IMG/VR virus record: IMGVR_UViG_3300029911_000001
Location: 124,001-188,000 of that record
DNA: 64,000 nucleotides
Reading direction: 5' to 3' (one strand)
Positions 8,645 to 63,155 of the stretch are shown one piece after another. A program made the position numbers and the translations under genes. Position 1 is the stretch's first letter, and each line of letters begins with the position of its first letter. Below the pieces are notes generated by a model, which had not been told where the DNA came from, searched no databases, and worked only from the letters and a program-made list of their open reading frames with translations.

Positions 8645-10189
8645 ATGGATGACATCGGTCACTTAGTTAAAGCCCTCATACGTGAAAATCCCTATGACCT
8701 GCTCATGGCGAACCGTAAGTATCTAGCGTTCGCCAACGAAGCACTGGTCGATGACCATCTCACCAAGGCGCTTGAAGCTGTAATCCTCTACTCAACTGAA
8801 TATGGTCGATGCCCTGAGAATATAACCTCAGTCATTGAGTATCTCGTTCGCAACGCGAAGCAGAACTCCGCATACGAGAAGACCGATGGGTATAGGCTCC
8901 AACTCGAAGAGATTCAGGACGACACCGACGAAAAGGAGCTTGGGGCCTCCGGTCTGATTGAGGATGTGTACCAGAAGGCATACACTTCCAAGCTAACAAA
9001 AATATACAGTCAGGCATCGAAGATAACTCTTGGTAGTTTCGCGTGTCCCTACACTAAGGAACGTGGACCTGTGGCCGCGAAGAATTACATTCGTGAGGAA
9101 GAGTCTCGGCTCGTGATAAAGAAGCCACCACAAATGGGGGGGGAACTTCGCGAGAACATGTCCCACATGAAGGAATACGTCAATAGCTTCATGATTGGTG
9201 ATACCCGACGTGTGCTCACTGGCATCAAGGCTATTGACGAGAAGACCCTCATCGGACGAAGACAGGCCAATCGCTGGATTGGCATCCTTGGTTACACTCA
9301 TCATGGCAAGTCACTCCTGCTGAACACACTGTTGTACAACATGGTTTGCAATGGGGCTAACGTATTGCTGTGCCCTCGTGAAAGTAGTGTTGAAAATGCG
9401 TTCATGCAGTTCATCTGGTTGCACCATAACAAGGTGTGCCCGGATGCTCCTATCGTGAGTCGTGCTGACTGGATGCGGAATGGTAACTCCAACACGTTCG
9501 AATCTTTCAACACAATGCAAATCATCATGAAAGACCTTGCAGAAGGGACTACCCTGCCCGGTAAGCTCGTGGTTGAGGGTTGCCGGAGTTGGGAAGAACT
9601 CAAGGATAAGGCGAAGGAGACTAATAAGAAGTTTGACTACGATGTGCTTGCCATCGACTACTTCGGTCACCTTGATACCAGCGGTGGGAATAAAAAGGAA
9701 AGCGACATGGAGAAGTACAAGAAAGACCTCCGTGACGCTCAAATGCTGTCTCTCGATGGACTTGAAGGTGACAAGAGTGGACTCGTCATCATCACCCCGT
9801 TACAAGCGAATAAGAAGGGACACGATGAAGCCGCCAAGCGTGAGGGTGACAACTTTGGCATCTACGAGAGTCTGGGTGCCGTCGAGTGGTTTACTCAAGC
9901 GGCCCAAGACATGGACTGCATTATGTCCGTGTGGATGGAAGGTGACCAATATGAGAATGGTGATAGCAAGAGGATGTTGGTCAACTGCATGAAGGGTCGC
10001 AACGACATGATTTTCAACCGAACGGTACTAACCGTCAACCCGAAGACTGGGCTGCTATATGACGACGTAGGGGGCGTGGCTGTGAAGTTAGACCGCGACC
10101 GCAACATGAATGACAGCCTGTCGCTCGAAGACATTGAGCAGTCGCTCAACACAACGGTGTCAATTGACTCCGAGAATTGGAGTAGGTAA
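8645..10189 (+). CDS. dnaB: DnaB-like replicative helicase
   Basis: Walker A GYTHHGKS, Walker B-like LAIDYF, LQANK motif, QDMDCIMSV, MKGRN arginine-finger region. Confidence 0.8.
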   Translation: MDDIGHLVKALIRENPYDLLMANRKYLAFANEALVDDHLTKALEAVILYSTEYGRCPENITSVIEYLVRNAKQNSAYEKTDGYRLQLEEIQDDTDEKELGASGLIEDVYQKAYTSKLTKIYSQASKITLGSFACPYTKERGPVAAKNYIREEESRLVIKKPPQMGGELRENMSHMKEYVNSFMIGDTRRVLTGIKAIDEKTLIGRRQANRWIGILGYTHHGKSLLLNTLLYNMVCNGANVLLCPRESSVENAFMQFIWLHHNKVCPDAPIVSRADWMRNGNSNTFESFNTMQIIMKDLAEGTTLPGKLVVEGCRSWEELKDKAKETNKKFDYDVLAIDYFGHLDTSGGNKKESDMEKYKKDLRDAQMLSLDGLEGDKSGLVIITPLQANKKGHDEAAKREGDNFGIYESLGAVEWFTQAAQDMDCIMSVWMEGDQYENGDSKRMLVNCMKGRNDMIFNRTVLTVNPKTGLLYDDVGGVAVKLDRDRNMNDSLSLEDIEQSLNTTVSIDSENWSR

Positions 10190-12301: not shown

Positions 12302-15300
12302 ATGTCAATTAAGGCCCTGCAATCTTACACGTTCCATTCGAAGTATGCCCGTTACAACCCTGAGCTAAAACGACGCGATACATGGTCAGAATCAAATGAT
12401 CGTGTGCTCAACATGCACCTGAGTCGCTATCCACAAATTGCCGAGGAACTGAACTGGGCATTCGAACAATCCAAAGCCAAGCGGGTACTTGGGAGCCAAC
12501 GGGCTCTCCAGTATGCTGGTACACCCGTGCTCCGCAAGCACGCTCGTGTTTACAATTGCACTGTCTCCTACTGCGACCGTCTCCGCTTCTTCCAAGAATC
12601 CCTATGGTTATTGCTGTGTGGCTCTGGTGTAGGGTTCTCCGTTCAGAAGCACCACGTTGCCAAACTGCCTGACTTCCTCGAAGGCCGTCAGTTGGGCGTC
12701 CCACAGCGTGAAGTTGAGTTCTACATCCCCGATGACATCGAGGGATGGGCTGATGCTCTCGGCAACCTGCTTGCCACGTACTTCCCTCACCCGGATTACC
12801 CGGAGTGTGCGGGTGCGAACATCAAGTTCAATTACAGCCTCATCCGTCCGAAGGGCTCCAAGCTTTCGTCCGGTGTAGGTAAGGCACCCGGCCCCGAACC
12901 ACTGGCTAAGTCACTGGAAGCCATCCGTGGACTCCTCGACCGCTGCTTGGCTGATGGACAGGCTCGTCTCCGTTCCATCGACGCCTACGACGTTGTGATG
13001 CACGCCAGCGATGCCGTGCTCTCAGGTGGCGTCCGTCGCTCAGCGACCATCTGCATCTTCTCGCCGGACGATGATTTGATGGCACGTGCCAAAATTGGCG
13101 ACTGGTACTACACCAACCCGCAGCGTGGCCGTTCCAACAACTCCGCGATGCTCGTGCGTAGCGCAACCAGCCGTGAAGACTTTCATGGACTAATGGGGTG
13201 GGTTAAGCAGTTTGGGGAACCGGGCTTTGTGTGGTCGGACTCCACTGAGATGATGTTTAATCCTTGTTTTCATCCTGAGGAAAGAATCTCCACCATAAAT
13301 GGGATGGAACGGCTGATTGATATGTTCCATACAGGTCAACCTAATCAGGTAGCTTATGATTCCCGTGCAGGTAAGTCCGATGAGCTTGACCTCAATCGCA
13401 AGGGGATTCAACTGTCCTCGGCATCAAAGGTCAAACTTACCCAAACTCAGGCCCCCTTGTTTCAGTTGAACACTGAGCATGGCCACACCCTCAGGGTCAC
13501 CGAGAACCACGAATTTCCGACCTTACGGGGGAGGCTGAAGCTAAGCTCTCTGGTACCCGGAGATACACTCCTACTCCCCTCGGCGGAACTCCCCTTTGGT
13601 AAGGACGGCTCGTTCGCCGCAGGTTTGGTACTCGGACTTATCACCGGGGACGGCTTCGTCAGTGGTCATCAAGCCTTCGTGGACGTGTGGAAAGCTGACT
13701 TCGATGTCTTAGACACGGTAAAGGAGTACATTCACTCGCTTATCGAACAGGTTCCTAGCAACGCCAATGGTGTCCGTGAGTATACCCAGTTGGATTGGGT
13801 GAAGCAGGGGGAGGACAAACGCAGGATAGGCGGACTGCGTCTCTATCGGTTCTTGAGGGAGAACTTGAACATCGAAGACCCGGCGACGATCAAGGATAAT
13901 ATTCCTGAGTGTGTATGGCGTGGGTGTCGGGAGATGGTGGTGGGTTACCTACAAGGACTTATGTTTGCAGACGGTGGCTTGAATCTGAGTGACCACAAAA
14001 AAGTACCTACTTTCTCTTGGCGACTTAACCAGAGCAATGAAGCCCTGCTGGTAGAGGTGCAGAGGTTGTTCGCGATGTTCGCGGTGGTTTCGAGGGTAAC
14101 TCCGCGTAGAAAGGCGGGGCGAACCCTTCTTCCCGATGGGCGCGGTGGCTCTAAACTCTATGCTACCAAAGACAACTTCGAACTCATTTTGAATCGACCT
14201 AATAGTATTAGGGCATACGAGGTCGTAGGGTGTTTCGGTCGCAAGAAGGATATCCTTCAGTCTCTGATGGGGTACTGTGGGACAAATTGTCGTAAACCGG
14301 AACGATTCATTACCAAAGTAAAATCCATCACACCTTGTGGTGTGTCCGATGTGTACTGCCTTACTCAATACACTTCCAACACCGTCATAGCAAATGGTTT
14401 GGTTACGGGTCAGTGTGTTGAAATTGGCATGTACCCGGTCGATGTCACCACTGGTCTCAGCGGATGGGCGTTCTGCAATCTCTGCGAAATCAATGGCAAG
14501 AAGTGCAAGACCAAGGAAGACTTCGCTATCGCTGCTAGGGCTGCTGCCATCATCGGCACGGCACAGGCTGGCTACACCGACTTCGAATACCTTGGTCAGA
14601 CTACCAAGAACATCGCCGACCGTGAGGCCCTTCTGGGTGTCAGCATCACCGGCATGATGGACTCGCCGGAGATTCTCTTCGACCCTAAAATTCAGCGTGA
14701 GATGGCACAGCTTGTTGTCGCCACCAACAAGGAAATCGCGGCGAAGATTGGTATCCGTCAGGCAGCACGTTGCACTTGCGTGAAGCCAGCCGGAACCACG
14801 TCCTGCATCCTCGGCACATCGAGCGGTATTCACGCTCACCACTCCAAGCGTTACATCCGCCGCGTTCAAGCCAACATGCTGGAAGCTCCATACCAGTTCT
14901 TGGCTGAGAAGAACCCGCGTGCGGTGGAGAAGAGCGTGTGGTCGAAGAATGGCACCGACTCGGTGATTGCATTTTGTATCGAGACGGCTGAAGGTGCTCG
15001 TACCCGCAAGGATATGACCGCCATCAAGCTGCTTGAGCATGTACGTTTGACGCAGAACAACTGGGTGGAAGCTGGCCGCAATGCTGAGCTTTGCACACAA
15101 CCCTATCTTCGTCACAACGTGTCGAACACCATCAACGTCCGCCCTGATGAATGGGACGAGGTTGAAGCCTACATCTACGAGCACCGTCAGGATTTCGCGG
15201 GTGTGTCCTTGCTTTCTAGCACGGGTGACCTTGATTATCCTCAGGCTCCCTTCAGTGCCATTCACACCCCGGCTGAAATCGTCAAGCTGTATGGCGACGG

Positions 15301-15724
15301 AAGCTTGATGGCTTCGGGTCTTATTGTCGATGGCCTCGCGGCGTTCGATAACAACCTATGGTTGGCTTGCGACTACGTGAACGGTGTCAACAAGCTGGAG
15401 TGCCCGGAACCGGTGGCAGTTGTTGACGATAACGGTAATGAGATTCACCCCACGGAAATCGAGATGGCTGAACGTGAGGAAGTCTTCAAGTGTGCTGTGA
15501 AGCGTGACTGGATTCGTCGTGCTCATCAGTTCTCTGACCGCTACTTCGAGGGCGACCGTAAGCTCATGAGTTACTGCCTGAAGGAAGTTCACAACTGGAA
15601 GTATTGGTGCGACCTTCAGCGTGAGTACGTCGATGTAGACTACAAAGACCTCATCGAAGAAGAAGACAACACCAAGATTCAGGACACGGTAGCTTGCGCT
15701 GGAGGTGTGTGTAGTTTTATGTAG
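12302..15724 (+). CDS. nrdJ: Class II (B12-dependent) ribonucleotide reductase with intein
   Basis: NCT, LLCGSGVGFS, GGVRRSA, NP/CVEI active site split by the intein, CVKPAGT, C-terminal CAGGVC; no class I Tyr-Tyr pair and no adjacent beta subunit. Confidence 0.85.
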   Translation: MSIKALQSYTFHSKYARYNPELKRRDTWSESNDRVLNMHLSRYPQIAEELNWAFEQSKAKRVLGSQRALQYAGTPVLRKHARVYNCTVSYCDRLRFFQESLWLLLCGSGVGFSVQKHHVAKLPDFLEGRQLGVPQREVEFYIPDDIEGWADALGNLLATYFPHPDYPECAGANIKFNYSLIRPKGSKLSSGVGKAPGPEPLAKSLEAIRGLLDRCLADGQARLRSIDAYDVVMHASDAVLSGGVRRSATICIFSPDDDLMARAKIGDWYYTNPQRGRSNNSAMLVRSATSREDFHGLMGWVKQFGEPGFVWSDSTEMMFNPCFHPEERISTINGMERLIDMFHTGQPNQVAYDSRAGKSDELDLNRKGIQLSSASKVKLTQTQAPLFQLNTEHGHTLRVTENHEFPTLRGRLKLSSLVPGDTLLLPSAELPFGKDGSFAAGLVLGLITGDGFVSGHQAFVDVWKADFDVLDTVKEYIHSLIEQVPSNANGVREYTQLDWVKQGEDKRRIGGLRLYRFLRENLNIEDPATIKDNIPECVWRGCREMVVGYLQGLMFADGGLNLSDHKKVPTFSWRLNQSNEALLVEVQRLFAMFAVVSRVTPRRKAGRTLLPDGRGGSKLYATKDNFELILNRPNSIRAYEVVGCFGRKKDILQSLMGYCGTNCRKPERFITKVKSITPCGVSDVYCLTQYTSNTVIANGLVTGQCVEIGMYPVDVTTGLSGWAFCNLCEINGKKCKTKEDFAIAARAAAIIGTAQAGYTDFEYLGQTTKNIADREALLGVSITGMMDSPEILFDPKIQREMAQLVVATNKEIAAKIGIRQAARCTCVKPAGTTSCILGTSSGIHAHHSKRYIRRVQANMLEAPYQFLAEKNPRAVEKSVWSKNGTDSVIAFCIETAEGARTRKDMTAIKLLEHVRLTQNNWVEAGRNAELCTQPYLRHNVSNTINVRPDEWDEVEAYIYEHRQDFAGVSLLSSTGDLDYPQAPFSAIHTPAEIVKLYGDGSLMASGLIVDGLAAFDNNLWLACDYVNGVNKLECPEPVAVVDDNGNEIHPTEIEMAEREEVFKCAVKRDWIRRAHQFSDRYFEGDRKLMSYCLKEVHNWKYWCDLQREYVDVDYKDLIEEEDNTKIQDTVACAGGVCSFM
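13265..14413 (+). mobile_element. 383-aa intein with LAGLIDADG homing endonuclease
   Basis: Starts CFHPEE, block B TENHEF, LGLITGDG and LQGLMFADG motifs, ends ANGLVTGQ|C; removal restores NPCVEI. Confidence 0.92.
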
Positions 15725-17976: not shown

Positions 17977-18579
17977 ATGACATTTGATAGGTACGGACGT
18001 AAACTGAAGAGACGCCGGACGTGGAAGGCTCTACCCCTACTCTGGATTGGTGCAGCAGTGGTAGGAGCCGCCATTGCCGCCCCGACATGCAGCAAGTTCA
18101 TCCCGACCACGACCGTGACCAAGGTGAAGAACCGTGTGAGTAAGACCACGGCAGACGCTTGGGCGAAGTGGCGTATCGCCCACCCCAACTGGAAGCCCAA
18201 TCCCAAGGTCGTTAGACCAAAGTACAAGATGACGACTCAGGAAGCTGTAGCTAAGGTAGAGTTCGCTTGCCAAGCTACTATTCTCGATGTGACCCCGCCA
18301 GAGATTCAACTGGATACGGTCTCGCCGCCCACCATTGAGTTGGCCCTGACCCCGGTCGAGCCTCCGCCTGTCACCCCTGATGTGGTAACCGACACTACGC
18401 CGGACACGCCTCCGGACACGCCCCTGACGCCTGTGCTGTTCACTGCACTGTCCTCACCGCCCACGCTCATCCCCTCGTCGCCCCTTGCCCCCACTCCTGA
18501 GCCGGGAAGCCTGTGGCTGATGGGCACTGGTTTGCTCTTCGTCGCAGCCGGTGTGCAGTATCAGAAAAGAAAAGTGTAG
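17977..18579 (+). CDS. PEP-CTERM sorting-domain protein
   Basis: C-terminus TPEPGSLWLMGTGLLFVAAGVQYQKRKV (PEP, TM helix, basic tail); N-terminal hydrophobic segment; Pro/Thr-rich linker. Confidence 0.8.
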   Translation: MTFDRYGRKLKRRRTWKALPLLWIGAAVVGAAIAAPTCSKFIPTTTVTKVKNRVSKTTADAWAKWRIAHPNWKPNPKVVRPKYKMTTQEAVAKVEFACQATILDVTPPEIQLDTVSPPTIELALTPVEPPPVTPDVVTDTTPDTPPDTPLTPVLFTALSSPPTLIPSSPLAPTPEPGSLWLMGTGLLFVAAGVQYQKRKV

Positions 18580-18619
18580 CGTTTTTCTGACAACCGTGTA
18601 TTATAGGTTCATACCACAT

Positions 18620-18800
18620 TGGCTTAGCAAGCTACAGCTTCGAGGTATCAGACTTACGGGGTCGATGTGGAGTAAGGCCCCGGAAACCCTTTGTGGAAGT
18701 AGAAGCTGGCACTGTCAGGGCACCGGGGACAGCAAACCCCTCAAGCCGACGAAAGACTCAGGGAACGGTAGCAACCCGGACTGACCCACAAAGCTAATTG
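18620..18800 (+). ncRNA. Candidate structured ncRNA, family unknown; strand assumed
   Basis: No ORF; long-range CTTTGTGG(18689)/CCACAAAG(18786) pairing enclosing several hairpins; TATTAT at 18599. Confidence 0.4.
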
Positions 18801-18821
18801 AAGAAATTCGAAAAATAGTTG

Positions 18822-18849
18822 TTGCAGTTTTCCCAATTTGTAGTATCTT
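18822..18849 (+). promoter_or_regulatory. Sigma70-like promoter of tRNA operon 1
   Basis: TTGCAG-16 nt-TATCTT. Confidence 0.55.
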
Positions 18850-18869
18850 ATTCAAGAGGACATTTTCAC

Positions 18870-18998
18870 ATGAACAGCACTCGCTCCAACTCGACCGTAG
18901 CCGTAGCCCCCGCAGTAGCGGTCGGCGTCGTGCGTGTCGCAGCCGCCGCTGAAGATTGCGCGGGAGGCGAGATGCTGGCCTTGGGTGGTGGAAACTAA
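18870..18998 (+). CDS. 42-aa attenuator-like leader peptide (Val/Ala/Gly/Glu/Asp/Cys-rich)
   Basis: RBS AGAGGA; MNSTRSNSTVAVAPAVAVGVVRVAAAAEDCAGGEMLALGGGN*. Confidence 0.75.
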   Translation: MNSTRSNSTVAVAPAVAVGVVRVAAAAEDCAGGEMLALGGGN

Positions 18999-19053
18999 CT
19001 AAGTTAGAATCCAAACCAACCGAGGCCACCCTAACCGGGTGGCTTTCTTATTT
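18977..19053 (+). terminator. Overlapping antiterminator (18977-19027) and intrinsic terminator (19023-19053)
   Basis: Terminator AGGCCACCC-TAACC-GGGTGGCTT plus TCTTATTT; GGCCTTGG(18977) can pair with CCGAGGCC(19020). Confidence 0.8.
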
Positions 19054-19066
19054 GGTGGCAACAAAT

Positions 19067-19142
19067 GCGGGGGTAGATTAGCGGCTAAATCATCGCCCTT
19101 ACAAGACGACTATCGTGGGTTCGAGTCCCACCCTCCGCACCA
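19067..19142 (+). tRNA. tRNA-Val(UAC)
   Basis: Cloverleaf, loop CT-TAC-AA, encoded CCA. Confidence 0.9.
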
Positions 19143-19172
19143 AGATTCGCAGTATTAGATGTTCAGATGTAT

Positions 19173-19247
19173 GCGGGATTAGTTCAGTGGTAGAACGCTT
19201 CCTTGCCAAGGAAGAGGTCGAGGGTTCGAATCCCTCATCCCGCTCCA
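19173..19247 (+). tRNA. tRNA-Gly(GCC)
   Basis: CTTCC-TT-GCC-AA-GGAAG; CCA. Confidence 0.95.
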
Positions 19248-19309
19248 AAAGTTTAGAGTCTCAGTGACTCGATGATGTATAGGTATTTGACAATTTAGGT
19301 TTGAATTTT

Positions 19310-19383
19310 GGGGTCGTCGTTCAGTGGGAGGACAACACGCTTGCACCGTGTCAACAGGGGTTCGAATCCCCTCGGCTCCACCA
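19310..19383 (+). tRNA. tRNA-Ala(UGC)
   Basis: ACACG-CT-TGC-AC-CGTGT; G3.U70; CCA. Confidence 0.9.
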
Positions 19384-19391
19384 AAAACGCT

Positions 19392-19652
19392 CTAAATGTG
19401 GTAACGTCCACGTTGCAACGTCCCAGATTTGCAAATTGGGTGCACAAAGGGGATGAAGCCCGTCTTTGCTTGTAGCAACTCGGTGGAATTGTGGTTTTTG
19501 TTATAATTGTTTGAGGAGTGGTTGGTACATTTTCTACACCATGAATTAAGGGTTATAGTAGTACCATTCTTATTCCTTCTGGTACGAACCCCAAAATACT
19601 CCTTTGAGGCGGGATGGTTGGTGTTACATTTAGAACACAGCTTGGATTCCAT
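19392..19652 (-). pseudogene. Antisense Zn-finger ORF, probable HNH-type endonuclease remnant
   Basis: ATG with RBS GGAG; KLCSKC...WCRKC; no complete nuclease domain. Confidence 0.45.
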
Positions 19653-19701
19653 TGCTTCTCCTAAGTTAGCTAATACAATGGAATCCAATAGTTGAAAAGA
19701 T

Positions 19702-20030
19702 TGCACCAGAGACTTCGGACAATCGCGACGTGAGCGCAATACTCACTTCGAGGAAATTCGGGGCATCATAGAACAACCTAGTGGGTAACGCCCACGCAGT
19801 GGAACATCACTGACGACAAGTGCCACAGAGACGAGCCTCTTCAGTGAGGAGTGAAACGCGGTAAACTTCTAGGTGATGCAACTTCAAATAGGCCGACAGG
19901 TGCTGTTCGTACCGTTATGAATCGGCGGGTTGAGGGCTAGAGCGTTGTGGTAACACAACGTCGAGACGAATGATTGTCGAACCACCGAAAGGTGGGGAAC
20001 AGAACCCCGGTTATAGAAGTCTCTGGTGCA
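19702..20030 (+). ncRNA. rnpB: RNase P RNA (bacterial type A-like)
   Basis: 15-bp P1 TGCACCAGAGACTTC/GAAGTCTCTGGTGCA; GAGGAAATTCGGGC (19750), AAGTGCCACAGA (19818), GTGAAACGCGGTAAAC (19851), ACAGAACCCCGGTTA (19999). Confidence 0.92.
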
Positions 20031-20040
20031 GTAAAGTTTT

Positions 20041-20157
20041 GAGTGCTCGTACCTCAGTGAACGCCGATGCGATGTTTGCCATCGGGGCGGTAGAGGACGG
20101 CCTACCCGAGCAGTTAGCGGATGGAAGAAGTCATGGGTTCGAACCCCATCGGCACTC
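20041..20157 (+). ncRNA. tRNA-like RNA with a hairpin inserted in the D-loop and no clear anticodon arm
   Basis: D-stem CCTC/GAGG, T-arm ATGGG-TTCGAAC-CCCAT, acceptor-like GAGTGC/GCACTC. Confidence 0.5.
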
Positions 20158-20271
20158 AAATAAGATGGACGACACCTGTCCAAGGACGTTCCACATGTGA
20201 GTGTGGTGTAGGCAAGCGGATATGCTCCGAAGCTGAGTCCAGTGGTGTGACGCCGGGGAGAGCACCGGGCT

Positions 20272-20345
20272 GCGGGATTAGTGTAGTGGTAACACGTCAT
20301 CCTTCCAAGTTGAAGTCAGGGGTTCAAGTCCCCTATCCCGCTCCA
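20272..20345 (+). tRNA. tRNA-Gly(UCC)
   Basis: Loop CT-TCC-AA; CCA. Confidence 0.92.
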
Positions 20346-20438
20346 AGTTCAAGCCATCCCAATACTGACGCACAAAGGCGGGTACGGTTCTAGGGTAATG
20401 GTGCGGGAGGATAACCTAAACCGCAAGTTTAGATTCAT

Positions 20439-20515
20439 GCACCGATAGCCAAGACGGTAAGGCGACAGATTGCAACCCTGTTAATGCGGGAGTTCGATTC
20501 TCCCTCGGTGCTCCA
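20439..20515 (+). tRNA. tRNA-Cys(GCA)
   Basis: Loop TT-GCA-AC; U73; CCA. Confidence 0.92.
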
Positions 20516-20524
20516 AGTTTCAAA

Positions 20525-20600
20525 GGGCGATTAGCTCAGTTGGGAGAGCGTTTCCATGGCATGGAAAAGGTCAAGGGTTCGAGCCCCTTATTGTCCACCA
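20525..20600 (+). tRNA. tRNA-Ala(GGC)
   Basis: TTTCC-AT-GGC-AT-GGAAA (A32-U38); G3.U70; CCA. Confidence 0.93.
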
Positions 20601-20879
20601 GTTTAGAAGAGGATGGAAAACTGGAAAGTTCCCGGTAACGGTGACACAATCCGGCTCACTGGCTCTCTAAAAGACACTGCACGTCTCTAAATGGCAGCGT
20701 AAGCGGCACGACACGTCCACCAAGTTTGGGGTAGCACTAGCGCACACCGCATATCAGGCGCGTGTCGGCAATAGGCTTGCAGATAGAAGTAAAGCTGCGG
20801 AACACAGTTTGAACTCGTGGTACGGACACAGTTTCGTCGTCAGCCGGTGAGCTAACACCGCTGGTGCCACGCGAAGTTT

Positions 20880-20954
20880 GGTGCTGTATCATAATGCCAA
20901 TGAACTCCCCTGTCGAGGGAGCTTATGAGGGTTGAACTCCCTTCAGCACCGCCA
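20880..20954 (+). tRNA. tRNA-Asp(GUC), atypical D/T loops
   Basis: CTCCC-CT-GTC-GA-GGGAG; G73; D-loop lacks GG; T-loop TTGAACT. Confidence 0.75.
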
Positions 20955-21014
20955 TTTTTTCAACTACAGAACCCTTATATGTAAGTCACTTCTGATACAT
21001 ATAAGGGTTCGATA

Positions 21015-21635
21015 ATGGCTAAAAAGAAAGAGAAAGAAGAAGCAATCAGGTTACGTGTTGAACACCGTCTCTCATTGGAAGTTATTTCTAAACAGTTAGG
21101 TGTATCTCAGAGTAGTTGCTCCTTATGGTTGAGAGGTTACCCTCTATCGGAGCAAGAAAAGAGCACTCGCAAACCCCCCTCTACGAAAGGTATTGCGCGT
21201 AAGATTCGGGGGGATAGGTCAAAGTTTTCTAATGTAGTTGACGGGCAGGAACTTACAAAATCTCGTAAGGGGAGAATAGCTGAATCTGCAATTCTATTTC
21301 GGTTGGCTCTTCATGGTCTGACCCCCTACGGTTCCCCGTTTGATGGTGATAAGACCGATTGGGTAGTAGAGAATGCACAAGGTAGAACTATGAAGGTACA
21401 AGTGAGGTGGGCGCGTGAGGCTAGAAAAGGGCTACCTTTTATCTCACTTCGAATTTCGGATGGGAGGCACAACACTCGTCGGTACACGGAAAATGAATTT
21501 GACTTTATTGTGGCTTACGACCTGTACACAGATACGGCTTATGTATTTAATCAAGAGGATGTAAGGAACAATACCGCACTTATCGCAGTATCAGAGGAGA
21601 GGGCGGAGAAGTGGCAACAGTTACTGGATTTTTGA
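21015..21635 (+). CDS. Free-standing PD-(D/E)XK endonuclease with N-terminal HTH
   Basis: KGRIAE...TDWVVE...KVQVR...FDFIVAY pattern; inserted in the tRNA array. Confidence 0.75.
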   Translation: MAKKKEKEEAIRLRVEHRLSLEVISKQLGVSQSSCSLWLRGYPLSEQEKSTRKPPSTKGIARKIRGDRSKFSNVVDGQELTKSRKGRIAESAILFRLALHGLTPYGSPFDGDKTDWVVENAQGRTMKVQVRWAREARKGLPFISLRISDGRHNTRRYTENEFDFIVAYDLYTDTAYVFNQEDVRNNTALIAVSEERAEKWQQLLDF

Positions 21636-21648
21636 TGAGGAAACAAGT

Positions 21649-21852
21649 ATGTGTCAAGCGTTTACACCGGACATGCGGAACTTCGATGAGAAGCCGTACA
21701 CACCGGATGAGCAGCGAGTAGTCAAGTACCTAGTTGAACTCACCAATGGAACGATTGGCGGCGGTGACGACCCTATCGGGTTCCTCATCGCGAGTCATGC
21801 AACGCTTTCTGACTTGAATGTGAAGCGTTGTCGAGAGGAAGCACATGGTTGA
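21649..21852 (+). CDS. Small hypothetical protein
   Basis: ATG with RBS GAGGA. Confidence 0.55.
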   Translation: MCQAFTPDMRNFDEKPYTPDEQRVVKYLVELTNGTIGGGDDPIGFLIASHATLSDLNVKRCREEAHG

Positions 21853-22009
21853 CTTTGAAGCAAACGGTTGGCGTAAGTTGACAGCAGAAGAGCAGGAAGG
21901 CATTCGTGAGTTTGAGCGAGTGATGAAGGAAGAGACCATACCTGCCATCGTGAAGACTATCCGTCTCCGTCAGGAATTGGCTAATGAATATCGAGGAATT
22001 TTGTACTAA
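21845..22009 (+). CDS. Small hypothetical protein (54 aa), not in the ORF track
   Basis: MVDFEANGWRKLTAEEQEG...; RBS GAGGA; overlaps the previous stop. Confidence 0.55.
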   Translation: MVDFEANGWRKLTAEEQEGIREFERVMKEETIPAIVKTIRLRQELANEYRGILY

Positions 22010-22014
22010 TGTTT

Positions 22015-22091
22015 GGGGATGTAACTCAGTCGGTCAGAGTATTCGCCTGTCGAGCGAAAAGTCGCGGGTTCGAACCCCGTCATCCCCGCCA
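22015..22091 (+). tRNA. tRNA-Asp(GUC)
   Basis: TTCGC-CT-GTC-GA-GCGAA; canonical; CCA. Confidence 0.95.
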
Positions 22092-22096
22092 AGTGT

Positions 22097-22200
22097 GAGA
22101 TGTAGTGTCAAGGTGTGGCGTTTGTATACGAACGTGAGCATCATTAGAACGGGGCCTTGTTGCGGCTCTGGTGTGGGTGAAAATCCCGCCGTCTCCGCCA
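22097..22200 (+). ncRNA. Degenerate tRNA-like unit
   Basis: GAGATG/CGTCTC acceptor-like, ends GCCA; T-like arm GTGGG-TGAAAAT-CCCGC; no 7-nt anticodon loop. Confidence 0.4.
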
Positions 22201-22271
22201 GTTTCAAATGTTGCAGCACGGTTTCAGTGAGTCCTGAAATGGCTGAAGGTTGGAGTAAGCTGATTGAATCT

Positions 22272-22346
22272 ACACCCGTAGCTCAGAGATAGAGCGTCTC
22301 CTTGACGTGGAGAGGGTCGGGGGTTTAATTCCCTCCGGGTGTACCA
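22272..22346 (+). tRNA. tRNA-Val(GAC)
   Basis: TCTCC-TT-GAC-GT-GGAGA; CCA. Confidence 0.92.
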
Positions 22347-22374
22347 AAGCAGGAGAGTTTGAAGTTACCAGAGT

Positions 22375-22432
22375 CGGGATGTAGCTCAGTGGTAGAGCCT
22401 AAAAGTCGCAGGTTCGATTCCTGCCTTTCCTA
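22375..22432 (+). pseudogene. tRNA-like unit lacking the anticodon arm
   Basis: Canonical D arm GCTC-AGTGGTA-GAGC joined by CTAAAAGTC to canonical T arm GCAGG-TTCGATT-CCTGC; weak acceptor stem. Confidence 0.7.
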
Positions 22433-22644
22433 TACGACGCTCTGGTGGACTGAAAGGCGGGAAGCGTATCGTGCTCGTATTCACATTGCGCGTACCGCCC
22501 AAGTTTATTAATGATGAGTTTCAAGTTCGAGAGTTGGAACCAGCAGCGGAACATATAGCAGCCCTCACAGCTATCGCGTGCTAGGTAAGGGCAAGGACGA
22601 AGAGGCAGCATGGAAAGATGCTGTCCGTCGCAAGAAACAGATTT

Positions 22645-22723
22645 GGGGCAAGGGACTGCCGGGGGTGGTCACCTCATTCGCAATGAGGAATTCAGCGGGG
22701 TTCAAGTCCCCGTTGCTCCACCA
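22645..22723 (+). tRNA. tRNA-Ala(CGC), atypical D arm
   Basis: CCTCA-TT-CGC-AA-TGAGG; GGGGCAA/TTGCTCC with G3.U70; CCA. Confidence 0.85.
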
Positions 22724-22731
22724 AAAGTTTC

Positions 22732-22806
22732 GGGGTTATAGCTCAGAGGGAGAGCACCGCATTTGCAATGCGGGGGTCGAGATTTCAAAATTCTCTAACT
22801 CCACCA
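22732..22806 (+). tRNA. tRNA-Ala(UGC), second copy
   Basis: CCGCA-TT-TGC-AA-TGCGG; G3.U70; CCA. Confidence 0.88.
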
Positions 22807-22826
22807 CTTTATTAGTCAAAAGTTTC

Positions 22827-22904
22827 GGGCGGTCTGGAATAAGAGTTTCAGACAGGCTGCACATAGAGGCAGAAGGGTGAGTTCGAATCCCTTCACGTCC
22901 ACCA
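22827..22904 (+). ncRNA. Degenerate tRNA-like unit with Ala-type acceptor end
   Basis: GGGCG/CGTCC-A-CCA (G3.U70); GTTCGAAT in an enlarged T-loop; anticodon unresolved. Confidence 0.45.
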
Positions 22905-22921
22905 ATTTTGAGGTTGATTGA

Positions 22922-23179
22922 ATGAAGTTCACACGTCGTCAGTTCTTCGCAGGGCTCCCGGTATTCATCATGCCGGGGTGGATGAAGGCGATAGCCTCAT
23001 GGTTCCAGCCTGAGGTCGCCGTAGTAAAGGCTCCTCTAATCAAGGGCTCGACCCAACTAAATGATGTCCTGCCAAAGCGTGTGATGGTACCAACGTTCGA
23101 AATAGTTTCGTGTCCGACAATCTTGCTCAAGGAAATCAAGGAGCGTAGGTTCAGGATACAAAGTGGGCCGGTAGCATAA
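22922..23179 (+). CDS. Small protein with twin-arginine-like N-terminus
   Basis: MKFTRRQFFAG; RBS GAGG. Confidence 0.55.
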   Translation: MKFTRRQFFAGLPVFIMPGWMKAIASWFQPEVAVVKAPLIKGSTQLNDVLPKRVMVPTFEIVSCPTILLKEIKERRFRIQSGPVA

Positions 23180-23243
23180 TGGGAATGCACATTCCTTGCG
23201 GCGAGTAACCGCACCCACCCGGCTCCAGTTTGAAAGGAGCTTC

Positions 23244-23426
23244 ATGGCTAAGTACACAGTACGTAACAAGGAAGGGCACCTTCTCGGAAGGACTGATAGC
23301 CCTGAGGTTTTGGTAGAAGAGATTTGCGAAGTATGTGAGAAGCAAGGAATTATTTACCACGTACACCCCGAGTCGGAAGAGCATAAAGGGTCTCCTAGCT
23401 TTCGACCAATGAAGTTTAGCAGATGA
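23244..23426 (+). CDS. Small hypothetical protein
   Basis: ATG with RBS AAGGAG. Confidence 0.55.
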   Translation: MAKYTVRNKEGHLLGRTDSPEVLVEEICEVCEKQGIIYHVHPESEEHKGSPSFRPMKFSR

Positions 23427-23452
23427 AATGGAAAAGCACGAAGGTTAAGTTT

Positions 23453-23527
23453 GGCCCTGTCCTCCAACGGTCAGGAGAGTGGGTTCTCAACCCGACAACA
23501 AGGGTTCAACTCCCTTCAGGGCCACCA
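23453..23527 (+). tRNA. tRNA-Glu(CUC)
   Basis: Loop TT-CTC-AA; GGCCCTG/CAGGGCC; CCA. Confidence 0.88.
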
Positions 23528-23534
23528 GTTTTAT

Positions 23535-23609
23535 GGCGCATTCGTTCATTGGTTAGGACCGGTGTTTTTCAAGCACCAGAAGAGGTTTCGATTACCTCAT
23601 GCGCTACCA
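23535..23609 (+). tRNA. tRNA-Glu(UUC)
   Basis: GGTGT-TT-TTC-AA-GCACC; CCA. Confidence 0.88.
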
Positions 23610-23992
23610 ATTTCGCTGGGAGGTCGGTGTGGACTCAGGCGACTCGCTGCAACCGAGTAGGCGTTGCGGGAGATATGCGAGGGAAAGATTGATCTTCCTG
23701 TCAGAACATCGGCAGTTGAAGTGGGCACCGGGGCTGAAGGGTCATCGCTAGAACAGGGTGGCCCTTCAGCAAAGTCTGCCGACCATTTGATACAATAGCT
23801 GGATGAGACGAGGCTACCAATGAACTGTACTAAGTGTGGTGAATCAGCCCTCGGAGTAGCTCTTGATGGACTACCTTACTGTCATCGCACAGAGTGTATT
23901 TTATGGAAGGTGGAATTGCAACGGTATCGGGATTTGCAAGCTCTCCCTTTTCCAGCACCGCAGCGACCGTTTGCAAAAAGTTTGGTGTTTAA

Positions 23993-24068
23993 GCGGGATT
24001 AGCTCAGTTGGTAGAGCGTTTCCTTCCCAAGGAAAATGTCGCGGGTTCGAGTCCCGCATCCCGCTCCA
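23993..24068 (+). tRNA. tRNA-Gly(CCC)
   Basis: TTTCC-TT-CCC-AA-GGAAA; canonical; CCA. Confidence 0.95.
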
Positions 24069-24086: not shown

Positions 24087-24794
24087 ATGAGCTTAGCATT
24101 GTACCCCACCGGCCAGCTTAGATTCTGGACGGAACAAGAAATCTCTCTTCGCGATGGTCTCATCCATCGTCTCTTCCATGTTGTGAAAGCTCCGCTTCAG
24201 ACTCTGAACAAGGCGTGGCGTTTCGAACGTGTTGAAGGCCCCCTACTCACTCCTGCCGACTACATCAGCCCAGCCTACACCGAGGATGACCTATGGGTAA
24301 CCAAGGGTCTAATCGCGGCTCAGGGTGTCGCCATGAGAGCGGAGACCACCGCATCCAGTTACATCTACGCCAAGCATCTGATGTCTCAGGAAGGCGGTAG
24401 CAATAAGCTACCTCTCTGCGTGTGGCAGTCAGGCAAGAGCTTCCGCAAGGAAGAGAGCGATGGTGCATCCGCATCCCGGCTCCGCTTCTTCGAGTTCTAT
24501 CAGCTTGAGTTCCAGTGCATCTACAGCAAGACCACCGGAGCCGATTACGTCGCCCCGGTCACATCTCGCGTGATGAAGGAACTTGAACTCATCACGGGGC
24601 ACAAAGCCCGTCTCGTTCGCTCCGACCGTCTCCCCTCTTATAGTGAAGCCACCTTCGATGTTGAAGTAGACTTCAACGGGCACTGGCGTGAGATGTGCAG
24701 CATTTCACAACGCACCGATTTCGAGGGTGCCAAGGTGTTGGAAGTCGCCATCGGTCTCGACCGGCTGGTAGCAGTCATCGGGGGTGGTGTCTAG
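24087..24794 (+). CDS. Minimal class II aaRS catalytic core, alpha2-type GlyRS-like, no anticodon-binding domain
   Basis: MRAETT, QSGKSFRKE, RFFEFYQLEFQ, LPSYS, EMCSISQRTDF, LEVAIGLDRL. Confidence 0.78.
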   Translation: MSLALYPTGQLRFWTEQEISLRDGLIHRLFHVVKAPLQTLNKAWRFERVEGPLLTPADYISPAYTEDDLWVTKGLIAAQGVAMRAETTASSYIYAKHLMSQEGGSNKLPLCVWQSGKSFRKEESDGASASRLRFFEFYQLEFQCIYSKTTGADYVAPVTSRVMKELELITGHKARLVRSDRLPSYSEATFDVEVDFNGHWREMCSISQRTDFEGAKVLEVAIGLDRLVAVIGGGV

Positions 24795-28730: not shown

Positions 28731-28854
28731 CGGTCGTATCCTCGTCTCAGGTATCCCAAATAAGGGGTCTATCCATGAGCTTGATAGCCAAAATTATTTT
28801 GTGACTACCGACGCCTATAAGTATAGGGGCATCTCGCCTCGTTATGGGAGTCAC

Positions 28855-31800
28855 ATGTTTAAGTTGTTTCAAAAATTCGGGATTCTTGTTACCTTGGTTT
28901 TCGCCTTTGGTTGCTCTATAGGACAGGCACAAATAAATCCAGAACAAATTCGGTGGCCTCTGCTCACAGGGACAGGTGTTCCTACCCTCTCCTGCTCGTC
29001 CGTTAACTATGGGCAACCTTACCAGAACACAGCAGTTACACCGAATACTTACTACACATGCGGCACAGATGGTTGGCAGATACGTATATCCCTCGGGCCT
29101 AAAGTGAATGCGACGAGCGTAGCCTTTGGCGCGGCATCATCCTGCGCAAACACTGCTGATCCAACAATGACACTGGATTCAACCTGCGCTATTAGGGCGG
29201 CGATTGCTTACGTTTATGCCCACGGTGCCAATGGAGTCTACCCAGCATTATATCTACCCGTTGGCAACTACAAGACTACCGCTGAGATACGAATACCCTG
29301 CGACGTATGGCTGGAGGGTGACGGGGTAACGGCAACCGTTATTTCCTTGACCAACAATGCAGCAAACGGAATTACCGTGTACGGCGATAACTCCGGCTCC
29401 GGTGATGCGTGGCAGTGCGTCGGCGGAATGCATGGTCTTGGTATTACCGCCATTGGCGCTCATCTTTACACCGCCGACCAATTGGAGATTGTCGGGTCTA
29501 CTGCATACACATTGAGGGATGTACTGGTACAGGGCGGCGGTGGCAGAGGTATCAATGTCACTGGCGGCTCAGAACGCTTGGACGCTGAAAATATCTTCAT
29601 CAACACAGTTCGCTGGCCTATGCTGTGGAAAGGTAACGAGAACCATCTCCGAAAATTGAACATTGCAGACCCCGGAAACTCCTCGGACAACTGGTGCTTT
29701 GCACAGGGAAATTGCGTTACCACACACACTTTCCCCAACTTTAATTGGAGCCTTCAGCAGACTCTAGTTTCAGCGGTTGGCTCAGGAACCCGCGCCTCCT
29801 ATGTTGTCACTGACACGGGGGGTGCCGGTTCTACTTTGGGTGTCTCCCCCATCGGCATTGGGCAATGGTTCACTGTTTCTGGAGTCACTGGAACGACCGG
29901 ACTGAATGGTGTGTTTCAGGTCGCATCGGCGACGAATGGCACCGTGACAGGTGGCTGCGCCGCGAACAGGTGCTACACCATTACTGCGGTAAATTCGACA
30001 AGTGGAACCGGCACCGGACTTGGCTCCGCAACGTTCCAACCGACTATTGTTGCAGATAGAAACGCCGCCGTTTATGCCTCCGGCTCAACATTCAAGATTG
30101 ATGGAGGATCGATCAAATCGCTAGAGTCATCTGGATGCTTTGATATTGGTAGCACGTTCGGAAGCACAATCGCTAACATTTACTGCGAGGGCTATCCGGT
30201 GAACGGCCAGCCCCACGTAAACTCATCAGTTACTGAGGGTAACCTCCCTGCTGAAACAACTACAACTGCCAGTCTTGGAGCTTCTGCGACAACCGTCACC
30301 GTGGTGGATACCTCGTGGTTCCCTAACTATGTGCAGACGGCATCTGACGCTAATAGTGCAGATATAATACAAGGAAAAATTGCCCCTTGCGACTACATCG
30401 AGCCACCAAACACCGGCTACAATGTGCAATCTGCCTGCGCTCCAACTGGCGTGTTGAAAGGCATGTGGGAAGCAGTCCAGATAACGATGACATCGACAGG
30501 TGCCCTGCTACAGCGGTGCCAGTCTGGGTCTACGGTAACGTGTACTGCCTATACGAGCGGACCTGTATGGCCTTCTGGCTCTCTGATTGCCAACGGACCT
30601 CCGGGAAACTATTCCTACCTCAAACTGGACACCGACCATTTTAATGCAATTGATGAGCCGGGGGCTAACTGGGCTGCGTATTGCAACGATCAATCATCTT
30701 TTATATGCGGAGAAATCATTGGTGGTGGTATTGAGAATGGTCTCACAACCGGGAGTTCTGGGTCTACGCTGGGAAGGCTTCAGCAAGCCCAAATCTTGTT
30801 CGACAATGATGAGTGGTGGGGCGGTATAAATTCGGCATCGCCGGGAAGTTCCTACTATGGCGACGGAACAATCAAAGCTGTAGGGCTTGGCATCGTCGCG
30901 CAAGCTACGGGAAGCACGTTCGGAAATGGGTATGCGGCGGATTCAAATGCTGTCAATGGGAAATTCACCGATGGCACAGCCAATAACGTCAATGACTCAG
31001 CACCCGGATTCGTCAATGTTCAATCGGCTGATACCTATTACCCTTCCTCTGAGTACAACAATCTCAGCAATGGCATGATCTTCAGCGCTTCGAGCGGTCT
31101 CTTCCGTAAAAACTTGAATGCCTACGGAGACCCCATTACTGGAAACAATCCGGGCGCGGGGTCGAATGGCTACAACAATGGAGCAGAGGTCGCAAACTCG
31201 ACTTGCACTTACGATACTCCGCTGACTTCAGGTACGCACTCGCTGAATCGCTGGTGTTTCGTGGGGGGACCAGGCAATAGTGGCACAGCAGCCGGTGTTG
31301 AATATGACACCTACAATACCGGGTCGTCAATATGGGTGACTCAGTTCAAAATAGACGGCACAGGAGCCATCACATTTGGGGGAGTTCCGACCTTTACAGA
31401 TGCAATTTTCCAAGCCCTACACATGGCTGCACCGGGGGATAAGGTTTATTTGGGCGATCCCGGCAACTGGCTTGAACGCGACAACACACTAAGCGGGGCA
31501 ACTCATTTTGCCGCACCGGGGTTTGACTTTGACAATAATGGTTCAGGTTCTCCACTAAACATCATGGACGGGGCTGGTGGCACATATCACGGGTACCTCT
31601 GCCTCAACTTGGATTCGTGTATCTCTAGAAATGGAAGCTCTAATCAGTTTCACTTTGGAAGCGGAGCCTATGGAGCCAGTGACGGAGCACTCTTTGCAGC
31701 CAACGCCACCTTCGGCGGCACGCTAACCGCGTTGAACGGGAGTATAAACTCCGTGATGAATGGAGCTACAGCAGAGTTTGGGATGAGTTCGTATCTCACA

Positions 31801-62825: not shown

Positions 62826-62853
62826 TTTACTTTCTCGAACTTCGTAGTATTAT
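62826..62853 (+). promoter_or_regulatory. Sigma70-like promoter of tRNA operon 2
   Basis: TTTACT-16 nt-TATTAT. Confidence 0.6.
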
Positions 62854-63068: not shown

Positions 63069-63155
63069 GGGCAGATGCGTGAGTGGCTAAAACGGGCTGG
63101 CTGTAACCCAGCTTCCCTAGTGGATTCGGAGGTTCAAATCCTCCTCTGCCCACCA
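63069..63155 (+). tRNA. tRNA-Tyr(GUA)
   Basis: GCTGG-CT-GTA-AC-CCAGC; long variable arm; CCA. Confidence 0.93.

Follow-up and report, generated by a model that had tools for sequence, protein, structure and literature searches.

What controls the tRNA genes carried by a giant phage, and why should a short open reading frame, written largely in codons for the very amino acids that these tRNAs serve, be placed (together with a transcription stop signal) directly in front of them? We addressed these questions in a 64,000-nucleotide stretch of IMG/VR virus record IMGVR_UViG_3300029911_000001 (positions 124,001 to 188,000; hereafter the window). The same design was found to recur in at least four unrelated phage lineages, which suggests (on sequence and folding predictions alone, in the absence of expression, ribosome-profiling or termination data for any of these phages) that phages gauge the supply of charged tRNAs and turn on their own tRNA genes when it runs short.

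A sequence-only reading of the locus had proposed a ribosome-mediated attenuator, composed of a promoter, a ribosome binding site, a 42-codon uORF, an anti-terminator pairing and a strong terminator, and all these features were confirmed in the sequence (Table 1). One small correction is needed: while 15 tRNAs had been counted, ARAGORN and Rfam recovered 14 intact ones plus a fragment that lacks the anticodon arm. The promoter (sigma-70-like) is a consensus match only, although the same type (A-rich stretch, TGTTGCA-like -35, N16, TATTAT-like -10) stands before three other tRNA units of this phage. As no second promoter of this type lies inside the array, we infer that it forms one transcription unit; the control of the RNase P RNA and of the GlyRS-like gene, also suggested by the sequence-only reading, is inferred only from the absence of a recognisable internal promoter.

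Table 1. Positions of the features discussed (window coordinates, unless locus L010 is given).
Feature	Position	Strand	Remarks
Conserved non-coding stretch (240-nt) upstream	18612-18805		No significant fold (z +0.5), hence no support for an additional RNA element
Promoter, module 1	18801-18849	+	A-rich upstream stretch; -35 TTGCAG (18822-18827), 16-nt spacer, -10 TATCTT (18844-18849)
Shine-Dalgarno-like site	18855-18860	+	AGAGGA, 9 nt before the ATG
Leader ORF 1	18870-18998	+	42 codons, MNSTRSNSTVAVAPAVAVGVVRVAAAAEDCAGGEMLALGGGN; stop codon 18996-18998
Stretch of sensing codons (codons 10-34)	18897-18971	+	22 of 25 are Val/Ala/Gly/Glu/Asp/Cys
Predicted anti-terminator hairpin, module 1	18977-19027	+	51 nt; 18977-18992 pairs with 19010-19027; encloses the stop codon; its last six bases (GAGGCC, 19022-19027) are the first six of the terminator stem; dG -25.9 kcal/mol, z -5.8
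Intrinsic terminator, module 1	19022-19053	+	19022-19046 plus TTTCTTATTT; 10-pair stem GAGGCCACCC/GGGUGGCUUU, 5-nt loop, tail UUUCUUAUUU; dG -16.9 kcal/mol, z -4.2; 13 nt before tRNA-Val
tRNA array 1	19067-24068	+	14 tRNAs: Val UAC (first, starts at 19067) and GAC; Gly GCC, UCC and CCC; Ala UGC x2, GGC and CGC; Cys GCA; Asp GUC x2; Glu CUC and UUC; also endonuclease-like ORFs
RNase P RNA (bacterial class A)	19707-20029	+	Inside array 1; Rfam RF00010, 179.6 bits, E 2e-56
tRNA fragment	22375-22432		Inside array 1; no anticodon arm
Class II aminoacyl-tRNA synthetase core fragment, weakly GlyRS-like	24087-24794	+	235 aa, 19 nt after the last tRNA, possibly co-transcribed; Pfam tRNA-synt_2b, 25 bits (below cut-off); PDB GlyRS 8t5n, E 1.4e-5; homologues at 46-53% identity in Caulobacter and Brevundimonas jumbo phages
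Promoter, module 2	62826-62853	+	TTTACT, 16 nt, TATTAT; same A-rich upstream stretch
Leader ORF 2	62924-63013	+	29 codons, MNRLSHNTTLGLSLYYLLSSGLVLSDRPS (Leu 8, Tyr 2, Ser 6)
Predicted anti-terminator hairpin, module 2	62981-63045	+	Encloses the stop codon; overlaps the terminator stem by 8 nt; dG -27.8 kcal/mol, z -5.0
Intrinsic terminator, module 2	63038-63068	+	Directly followed by tRNA-Tyr; dG -17.8, z -4.7
First two tRNAs of array 2	63069-63255	+	Tyr GUA x2; five tRNA-Leu follow beyond the window's end; locus L010, 10888-12719
Small uORF before the lone tRNA-Phe	L010 18380-18430		One Phe codon; stop codon inside the terminator loop

Could the resemblance between leader and array be fortuitous? 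Codons 10-42 of the first leader hold Val 7, Ala 10, Gly 6, Glu 2, Asp 1 and Cys 1 (27 of 33), and make use of all four Ala codons, both Glu codons and three GTA codons. Over the whole leader 27/41 residues fall in the array's set, against 0.36 expected from the phage's long ORFs (P 9e-5), and all 27 such codons are readable by the array's anticodons. The uORF is the single most extreme of 609 small ATG ORFs in 83 kb of this phage. The first nine codons of leaders 1 and 2 (Asn, Ser, Thr, Arg, His), however, match no tRNA found.

We also searched for related loci. The identical peptide is indexed in 43 blocks of the contig collection (in many samples), and an 82% identical version, likewise followed by a terminator and by tRNA-Val, Gly and Ala, was found in a divergent relative (L041), in which the promoter is nearly identical and the Shine-Dalgarno site is conserved. 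L041 keeps a hairpin of the same shape (dG -27.2, z -6.3), whose inner helix has different bases on both strands, while the C-terminus of the peptide changes. Since only two distinct sequences of leader 1 exist, the covariation rests on one comparison. Other routes yielded little: searches of IMG/VR through flanking proteins returned only identical copies, plus one 60% relative of the GlyRS-like gene without tRNAs nearby; walking the genome by exact protein look-up gave only contigs under 2 kb; and blastn of the leader region against GenBank phages matched only tRNA-Gly. The possibility that the region is an untranslated structured RNA (a small RNA or a processing signal for the tRNA precursor), with an incidental reading frame, is in line with the leader folding more stably than shuffles (z -2.5 to -2.8) and with the need of tRNA precursors for 5' leaders for RNase P. 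We consider it very unlikely, as no Rfam leader, riboswitch or small-RNA family matched at gathering score (the best hit below threshold being Phe_leader, 18.8 bits against 55, E 1.9, over the terminator only), a three-base periodicity with start codon, Shine-Dalgarno site and in-frame stop is kept in L041 despite 18% amino-acid change, and the codon-to-tRNA match has no meaning for an untranslated RNA.

The same phage carries two further modules. The second is built in the same way before tRNA-Tyr x2 and Leu x5: 10/28 residues of its leader are Leu or Tyr, against 0.12 expected (P 9e-4), and it uses five Leu codons, all readable by the array's four Leu anticodons, and not UUA (for which there is no tRNA). 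Its six Ser codons remain unmatched, as no tRNA-Ser was found in 20 kb downstream, even at relaxed ARAGORN settings (which yield about one false call per kb). In the third, a Pro-rich uORF (6 Pro in 20 residues after the start Met, P 2e-4) precedes two tRNA-Pro, while tRNA-Met has the same promoter without a leader. A fourth small uORF, before the lone tRNA-Phe, does not fit the scheme, given its one Phe codon and the placement of its stop.

Outside this phage, codon-matched leader, terminator and array were found in Tunturiibacter phage Tunturi_5 (three modules, in one of which LCLSSYCLSSSLSLS precedes Leu, Cys, Tyr and Ser tRNAs), in the Caulobacter phages RB23, CcrSC, CcrColossus and phiCbK (two modules each), and in an unrelated AT-rich IMG/VR contig (L103). 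In the Caulobacter phages YRQFVRQIQFVRVNR precedes Tyr-like, Val, Ile, Gln, Asn, Arg and Phe, and gp135 (33/38 in set) precedes Pro, Thr, Lys, Leu, His, Ala, Ser and Trp; between RB23 and CcrSC the sensing run is invariant while its flanks vary. The leaders pointed to tRNA-like genes for Tyr, Thr, His, Ser, Asn and Arg that are not annotated in the Caulobacter phage records, although in phiCbK those corresponding to the Thr, His and Arg codons are found in the array gaps only at a relaxed threshold (with the false-call rate noted above). In L103, IHNIHINFSQWCQPYI precedes an array of exactly those amino acids plus Arg. This contig came from a promoter-motif scan of IMG/VR that otherwise returned unrelated AT-rich loci (about 80 in total); an earlier scan had returned the phage's two modules and chance hits without tRNAs.

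Taken over eight modules, 30-87% of leader residues belong to the own array's amino-acid set (each P 2e-8 to 9e-4; Fisher P 6e-25), every array amino acid is present in its leader, and the own-array match exceeds the other-array match in every genome; leader composition follows array content both within one genome and between genomes. An unbiased scan of 160 candidate uORFs placed most of the modules among its top-ranked hits, with none in two control phages (Atu_ph07 and RsoM2USA), whose tRNAs are scattered and which have no matching uORFs, so the design is not universal. These data bear on a second alternative, namely that the uORF is an ordinary small-protein gene (for an Ala/Val/Gly-rich peptide) with its own promoter and terminator, that the tRNAs are made by leaky read-through, and that the resemblance is coincidence or shared base composition. 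Indeed, GNN-rich reading frames are common in coding DNA, the peptide is called as a gene in public data, and homologues are annotated as hypothetical proteins in Tunturi_5 (gp308), RB23 (gp135) and phiCbK (gp083). Nonetheless, this reading appears highly improbable: the match recurs for arrays with quite different amino-acid sets (including Leu/Cys/Ser/Tyr and Ile/His/Asn/Phe/Trp/Cys/Gln/Pro/Tyr) that no base-composition bias explains, each of five leaders checked is the most extreme small ORF of its locus and lies exactly in front of its array, and between relatives the peptide ends vary while the RNA hairpin or the sensing run is kept.

How might the leader act on the array? The pairing proposed by the sequence-only reading is the minimum-free-energy fold (0 of 200 shuffles were as stable as the hairpin) and belongs to the minimum-energy fold of the whole leader. 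When a ribosome is placed on the stop codon the predicted fold switches to the full terminator. A ribosome held with its A site at codons up to about 32 leaves the hairpin's sequence free, whereas from codon 33 on the predicted probability of the full terminator rises to 0.83-0.93. The equilibrium stall scans were informative for the window's leader 1 and for Tunturi_5 leader B, and weak for the others; in the three Tunturi_5 modules the predicted terminator is kept at most stall positions. A pairing test between each terminator's 5' arm and its uORF was not significant for the GC-rich modules (P 0.03-0.5), and we do not use it as evidence except for L103, whose anti-terminator was matched by 0 of 2000 shuffles. 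The direction of the switch, which rests on folding predictions, is therefore well grounded only for the window's two modules, L041 and L103. It remains possible, albeit unlikely, that the same parts work with a different coupling or the opposite sign: a ribosome close behind polymerase could suppress termination (or Rho action) and a stalled one allow it, so that the array is made only when the matching tRNAs are already sufficient, or stalling could trigger cleavage or processing of the leader transcript. The persistence of the Tunturi_5 terminators, the uORF before tRNA-Phe (where a translating ribosome would block the terminator) and the steady gap from stop codon to terminator in five modules (20-29 nt, which could reflect a geometric coupling) speak for such a scheme. 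Against it, in the window's two modules, L041 and L103 a strong alternative helix that the ribosome would disrupt overlaps the terminator's 5' arm, which gives the classical sign, and positive feedback on tRNA supply has no evident use.

We reason that the element is most likely a ribosome-mediated transcription attenuator that puts the phage's tRNA array under feedback control by the supply of the matching charged tRNAs, and hold this interpretation with good confidence, although translation of the leader, the direction of the switch, the extent of the transcription unit and the cause of tRNA depletion during infection are inferred. In this view, a ribosome loads on the leader while RNA polymerase moves on. 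If aminoacyl-tRNAs for Val, Ala, Gly, Glu, Asp and Cys are plentiful, it reaches the stop codon (in the top of the hairpin) and melts or blocks the hairpin's 5' strand, so GAGGCC is free to complete the terminator and the transcript ends at about 19053. If any of them is scarce, the ribosome lags at one of the 24 matching codons that lie at or before codon 32, the hairpin forms first and holds GAGGCC, the terminator is reduced to 4-5 pairs, and polymerase reads on into the 14 tRNA genes, the RNase P RNA and perhaps the GlyRS-like gene. As phage tRNAs accumulate, the leader is read faster and transcription is shut off again. The trigger put forward by the sequence-only reading (host anticodon nucleases) is speculation.

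The closest known systems are the leader-peptide attenuators of amino-acid operons in Proteobacteria (trpL, hisL, leuL, thrL, ilvL/ivbL, pheL), with which the element shares a short leader rich in the relevant codons, an intrinsic terminator before the first controlled gene and a (predicted) mutually exclusive anti-terminator dependent on ribosome position; thrL and ilvL also sense more than one amino acid, and L103 even shows the full 1:2, 2:3, 3:4 arrangement. Here, however, the element is phage-borne, the controlled genes are tRNA genes (plus an RNase P RNA) and not the biosynthetic enzymes or aminoacyl-tRNA synthetases that described members seem to control (only the last ORF is synthetase-like, and weakly so), the sensed molecule is thus closely tied to the product, and up to ten or eleven amino acids are sensed at once, with the leader listing every amino acid of the array. 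In the window's modules there is no 1:2 helix and the anti-terminator is the default fold; without translation the predicted default is read-through, unlike trp. The pheST attenuator of E. coli applies leader-peptide attenuation to a component of the translation apparatus and senses charged tRNA, but it is chromosomal and controls a synthetase for one amino acid. T-box riboswitches also regulate by terminator read-through in response to the charging state of a specific tRNA, yet they bind uncharged tRNA directly (through a specifier codon and the T-box sequence, without translation) and control synthetase, transporter and biosynthesis genes, not tRNA arrays; no RF00230 match was found in the window at gathering score, or in 18400-19100 at E up to 10. 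Polycysteine leaderless short ORFs acting as Cys-responsive attenuators in mycobacteria (bioRxiv 10.1101/834739) lie at the very 5' end of the transcript and carry runs of one codon type, and several modules here (the Pro leader, RB23 leader 2, Tunturi_5 leader A) also have almost no 5' untranslated region; they differ in sensing one amino acid and in attenuating cellular protein-coding operons. In agreement with the sequence-only reading, which knew of no attenuator controlling a phage tRNA array in this way, literature searches (in an incomplete library) found no prior description.

Why phages carry tRNAs, and how they use them, is an open question, for which codon-usage compensation, replacement of a degraded host pool and escape from tRNA-targeting defence have been proposed; all these discussions treat the arrays as simply expressed. 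A sensor that reads the charged-tRNA pool and feeds back on the array would change that view, and would be, to our knowledge, the first case of leader-peptide attenuation controlling RNA genes and of sensing up to about ten amino acids at once. It would also make the depletion hypotheses directly testable, as two of the carrier phages have culturable hosts (Caulobacter vibrioides CB15 with phiCbK, CcrSC or RB23, and Tunturiibacter with Tunturi 5), and it offers compact, modular sensors of tRNA supply for synthetic biology. In a broader reading, which we hold to be somewhat more probable than not, codon-matched leader peptides are a widespread, so far unrecognised class of phage regulatory element, in which each tRNA array carries in front of it a short 'shopping list' ORF naming every amino acid the array serves. 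The phage would thereby sense, codon family by codon family, the state of the cell's aminoacyl-tRNA pool and switch on just the array that is needed, with depletion arising perhaps from host shut-off, from a mismatch between phage codon demand and host supply, or from tRNA-cleaving defence systems. On this reading the leader can be used to predict or find tRNA genes that annotation misses, and phage tRNA arrays are inducible and self-limiting, not constitutive cargo.

The analyzed window is part of a very large phage genome; it is identical to the IMG/VR contig 3300029911_000001 (231 kb) and to a 431,749-bp JGI contig, and encodes a ribonucleotide reductase (interrupted by an intein with a LAGLIDADG endonuclease domain), a DnaB-like helicase and other phage replication proteins. 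Its nearest cultured relative, Tunturiibacter phage Tunturi_5, is distant (37% identity in a helicase). A 200-aa phage protein that ends in a PEP-CTERM sorting signal (Pfam 22 bits) points to a Gram-negative host with an exosortase system. The region in front of the first tRNA array reads as an A-rich stretch, the motif TTGCAG, 16 nt, TATCTT, the sequence AGAGGA, and (nine bases later) an ATG that opens a 42-codon frame, followed by a terminator with the tail UUUCUUAUUU and, 13 nt later, by tRNA-Val(UAC). The fourteen tRNAs that follow decode all GNN codons, plus Cys. The codon counts of the sequence-only reading (27 of codons 10-42 matching the amino acids of the array) are exact, and the only correction concerns the size of the array, which holds 14 intact tRNAs plus one fragment, rather than 15 tRNAs. 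The fragment (Rfam 42 bits; not called by ARAGORN) retains the acceptor, D and T arms but no anticodon arm, and is probably a decayed tRNA gene. Noteworthy, a complete bacterial class A RNase P RNA (Rfam 179.6 bits) lies inside the array, between tRNA-Ala and tRNA-Gly; a phage that brings its own tRNA 5'-processing ribozyme is unusual. Directly after tRNA-Gly(CCC) lies a fragment of a class II aminoacyl-tRNA synthetase core (235 aa, weakly GlyRS-like), with homologues at 46-53% identity in Caulobacter and Brevundimonas jumbo phages, which also carry codon-matched leaders. Endonuclease-like ORFs (PD-(D/E)XK with HTH, GIY-YIG-like, HNH-like) are interspersed between the tRNA genes of both this array and a second one, as if the arrays were landing sites for homing endonucleases.

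Coordinates of the features in the window and in the other sequences examined (L010, sequence of the same phage continuing beyond the window's end; L057, RB23; L058, CcrSC; L145, CcrColossus; L146, phiCbK)
Sequence	Position	Feature
Window	12302-15724	Ribonucleotide reductase gene with intein
Window	17977-18579	Phage protein with PEP-CTERM sorting signal
Window	18801-19066	Region from the A-rich stretch to the first tRNA
Window	18870	ATG of the 42-codon leader frame
Window	18870-18896	First nine codons of leader 1 (MNSTRSNST)
Window	18977-19027	Anti-terminator hairpin (predicted)
Window	18996-18998	Stop codon (TAA) of the leader frame
Window	19022-19046	Terminator stem
Window	19707-20029	Class A RNase P RNA
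Window	21015-21635 and 63293-63925	Endonuclease-like ORFs
Window	22375-22432	tRNA fragment
Window	24068	End of the first tRNA array
Window	24087-24794	Class II aminoacyl-tRNA synthetase core fragment
Window	28801-37275	Single ORF of 2824 codons
Window	62924-62950	First nine codons of leader 2 (MNRLSHNTT)
Window	63069	Two tRNA-Tyr of the second array
L010	11429-12082 and 12128-12454	Endonuclease-like ORFs
L010	17723-17818 (about 7 kb beyond the window's end)	wcaG RNA motif match
L057	29869-29958	tRNA-Tyr(GUA)-like gene
L058	about 19735-19815	tRNA-Tyr(GUA)-like gene
L146	about 9765-9848	tRNA-Tyr(GUA)-like gene
L146	6303-6365	20-codon uORF before tRNA-Glu/tRNA-Asp
L145	6928-6993	20-codon uORF before tRNA-Glu/tRNA-Asp

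The minimum-energy fold of the leader contains the pairing proposed in the sequence-only reading (between the 3' end of the uORF and the stretch running into the terminator's 5' arm). The resulting 51-nt hairpin has a dG of -25.9 kcal/mol (z -5.8), holds the stop codon in its apical part, and its last six bases are the first six of the terminator stem. When a ribosome footprint was placed on the stop codon, the prediction changed to the complete terminator. A scan over all A-site positions puts this change at codon 33, and therefore 24 of the 27 matching codons lie where a stalled ribosome would leave the hairpin free. In the prediction made without any ribosome the anti-terminator is the default, and in this the element differs from trp.

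A paralogous unit was found upstream of the two tRNA-Tyr, with the same promoter motif, an SD, a 29-codon uORF beginning MN (like the first), and a 65-nt hairpin (z -5.0) that encloses the stop codon and overlaps a terminator abutting the tRNA. Beyond the window's end this array continues with five tRNA-Leu. The leader has 8 Leu and 2 Tyr in the 28 residues after the start Met (P 9e-4) and uses exactly the five Leu codons that the four Leu anticodons can read, although it also has 6 Ser codons for which we found no tRNA, a mismatch that is unresolved. Both leaders start with a similar nine-codon stretch made of Asn, Ser, Thr, Arg and His, and no tRNAs for these amino acids were found in the 83 kb examined; it is either a spacer or relates to arrays elsewhere in the 431-kb genome. 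A third promoter of the same type is followed at once by MKFTSPNPSFPPCPTLHGPDL, which has 6 Pro in the 20 residues after the start Met (P 2e-4), and then by two tRNA-Pro. By contrast, tRNA-Met has the promoter but no leader, and a small uORF before the lone tRNA-Phe does not fit the scheme (between tRNA-Met and tRNA-Phe we also registered a match to the wcaG RNA motif, at 42.2 bits just at the Rfam gathering score).

The design was also recovered from unrelated phages. Tunturi_5, which shares almost no proteins with this phage in the regions compared, has 41 tRNAs in three arrays, each preceded by a uORF and a terminator. MKTLCLSSYCLSSSLSLS... precedes Leu, Cys, Leu, Leu, Tyr, Leu, Ser, Ser, Ser, while a leader rich in Ala, Gly, Thr, Gln, Pro, Phe, His and Asn precedes Asn, Gln, Gly, Thr, Pro, His, Ala and Phe tRNAs. 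The third leader, gp308 (rich in Arg, Asp, Val, Lys, Ile, Gly, Trp, Glu and Met, and without a single Ala), precedes Trp, Asp, Met, Lys, Val, Arg, Glu, Ile and Gly tRNAs. Metagenomic relatives of gp308 (at 94% and 75% identity) stand before the same array, and in the more distant one several non-matching residues are replaced by matching ones.

In Caulobacter phage RB23, gp135 has 33 of 38 residues in the set of the array behind it (Pro, Thr, Lys, Leu, His, Ala, Ser, Trp), and a second uORF, containing YRQFVRQIQFVRVNR, precedes a strong terminator, an unannotated tRNA-Tyr-like gene, and Val, Ile, Val, Gln, Asn, Arg, Phe. Homologous leaders are present in CcrSC, CcrColossus and phiCbK, where the sensing run is kept while its flanks vary. 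A conserved tRNA-Tyr(GUA)-like gene with a long variable arm heads the Val/Ile/Gln array in three of the Caulobacter phages (RB23, CcrSC and phiCbK) but is not annotated in any record, and it was the Tyr codon in the leaders that drew attention to it. In phiCbK, the leaders' Thr, His, Arg and Asn codons correspond to tRNA-like genes that sit in the gaps of the array. Most of these are detected only at a relaxed ARAGORN threshold or by Rfam below its cut-off; that threshold gives about one false call per kb, so this point is suggestive rather than proven. In phiCbK and CcrColossus a conserved 20-codon uORF (MTHLLTRYEREATGLDTTTA) overlaps an annotated terminator just before the tRNA-Glu/tRNA-Asp pair, but its Glu/Asp enrichment is weak and we did not count it as a module. 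A textbook case was encountered by chance in L103 (an AT-rich IMG/VR contig), which carries a TTGACT-N17-TATAAT promoter, the leader MKIHNIHINFSQWCQPYIGG..., a segment GGAUUGGGGU complementary to the terminator's 5' arm (matched by 0 of 2000 codon shuffles), and an array of Ile, Asn, Tyr, Trp, Phe, Pro, Gln, His, Ser, Arg and Cys tRNAs.

For eight modules (three in this phage, three in Tunturi_5 and two in RB23) the share of leader residues belonging to the set of their own array is 0.30-0.87, against 0.04-0.49 expected (P between 2e-8 and 9e-4 for each module; Fisher's combined P 6e-25). Every amino acid of every array occurs in its leader (including Trp, Cys and His), and within each genome the own-array match is the highest. 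Each of the five leaders tested is the most extreme small ORF of its locus for the set of its array. An automatic scan of all 160 ATG ORFs of 12-70 codons upstream of array starts in six loci puts most of these modules among its top-ranked hits, and returns nothing in the phages Atu_ph07 and RsoM2USA.

The leader DNA of the window's element is identical in many strain variants. A diverged relative (L041, with an 82% identical peptide) keeps the promoter, SD, frame, terminator and tRNA order, while its anti-terminator hairpin has the same outline (z -6.3) but a different inner helix, and the C-terminus of the peptide differs. This pattern points to selection on the RNA structure and on the codon content, rather than on a peptide product.

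As inferred from its structure, the element works like the trp, his, thr, ilv and pheST attenuators and satisfies the structural criteria of that class, although it lacks a 1:2 helix and, in this reading, controls RNA genes rather than enzymes. No Rfam leader or T-box model matches it. In the full-text literature searched we found no description of leader peptides or attenuators before phage tRNA arrays. The Tunturi paper (PMC11924767) lists the tRNAs only, while the phiCbK and CcrColossus records annotate the terminators and, in phiCbK, the small ORF gp083 as hypothetical. The direction of the switch is well supported by structure prediction for the window's two modules, L041 and L103, but only weakly supported for the Tunturi_5 modules. 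Translation, termination, the extent of the transcription unit and the physiological trigger are all inferred (and not measured); the best reading is classical ribosome-mediated attenuation applied to tRNA genes, giving negative feedback on tRNA supply.
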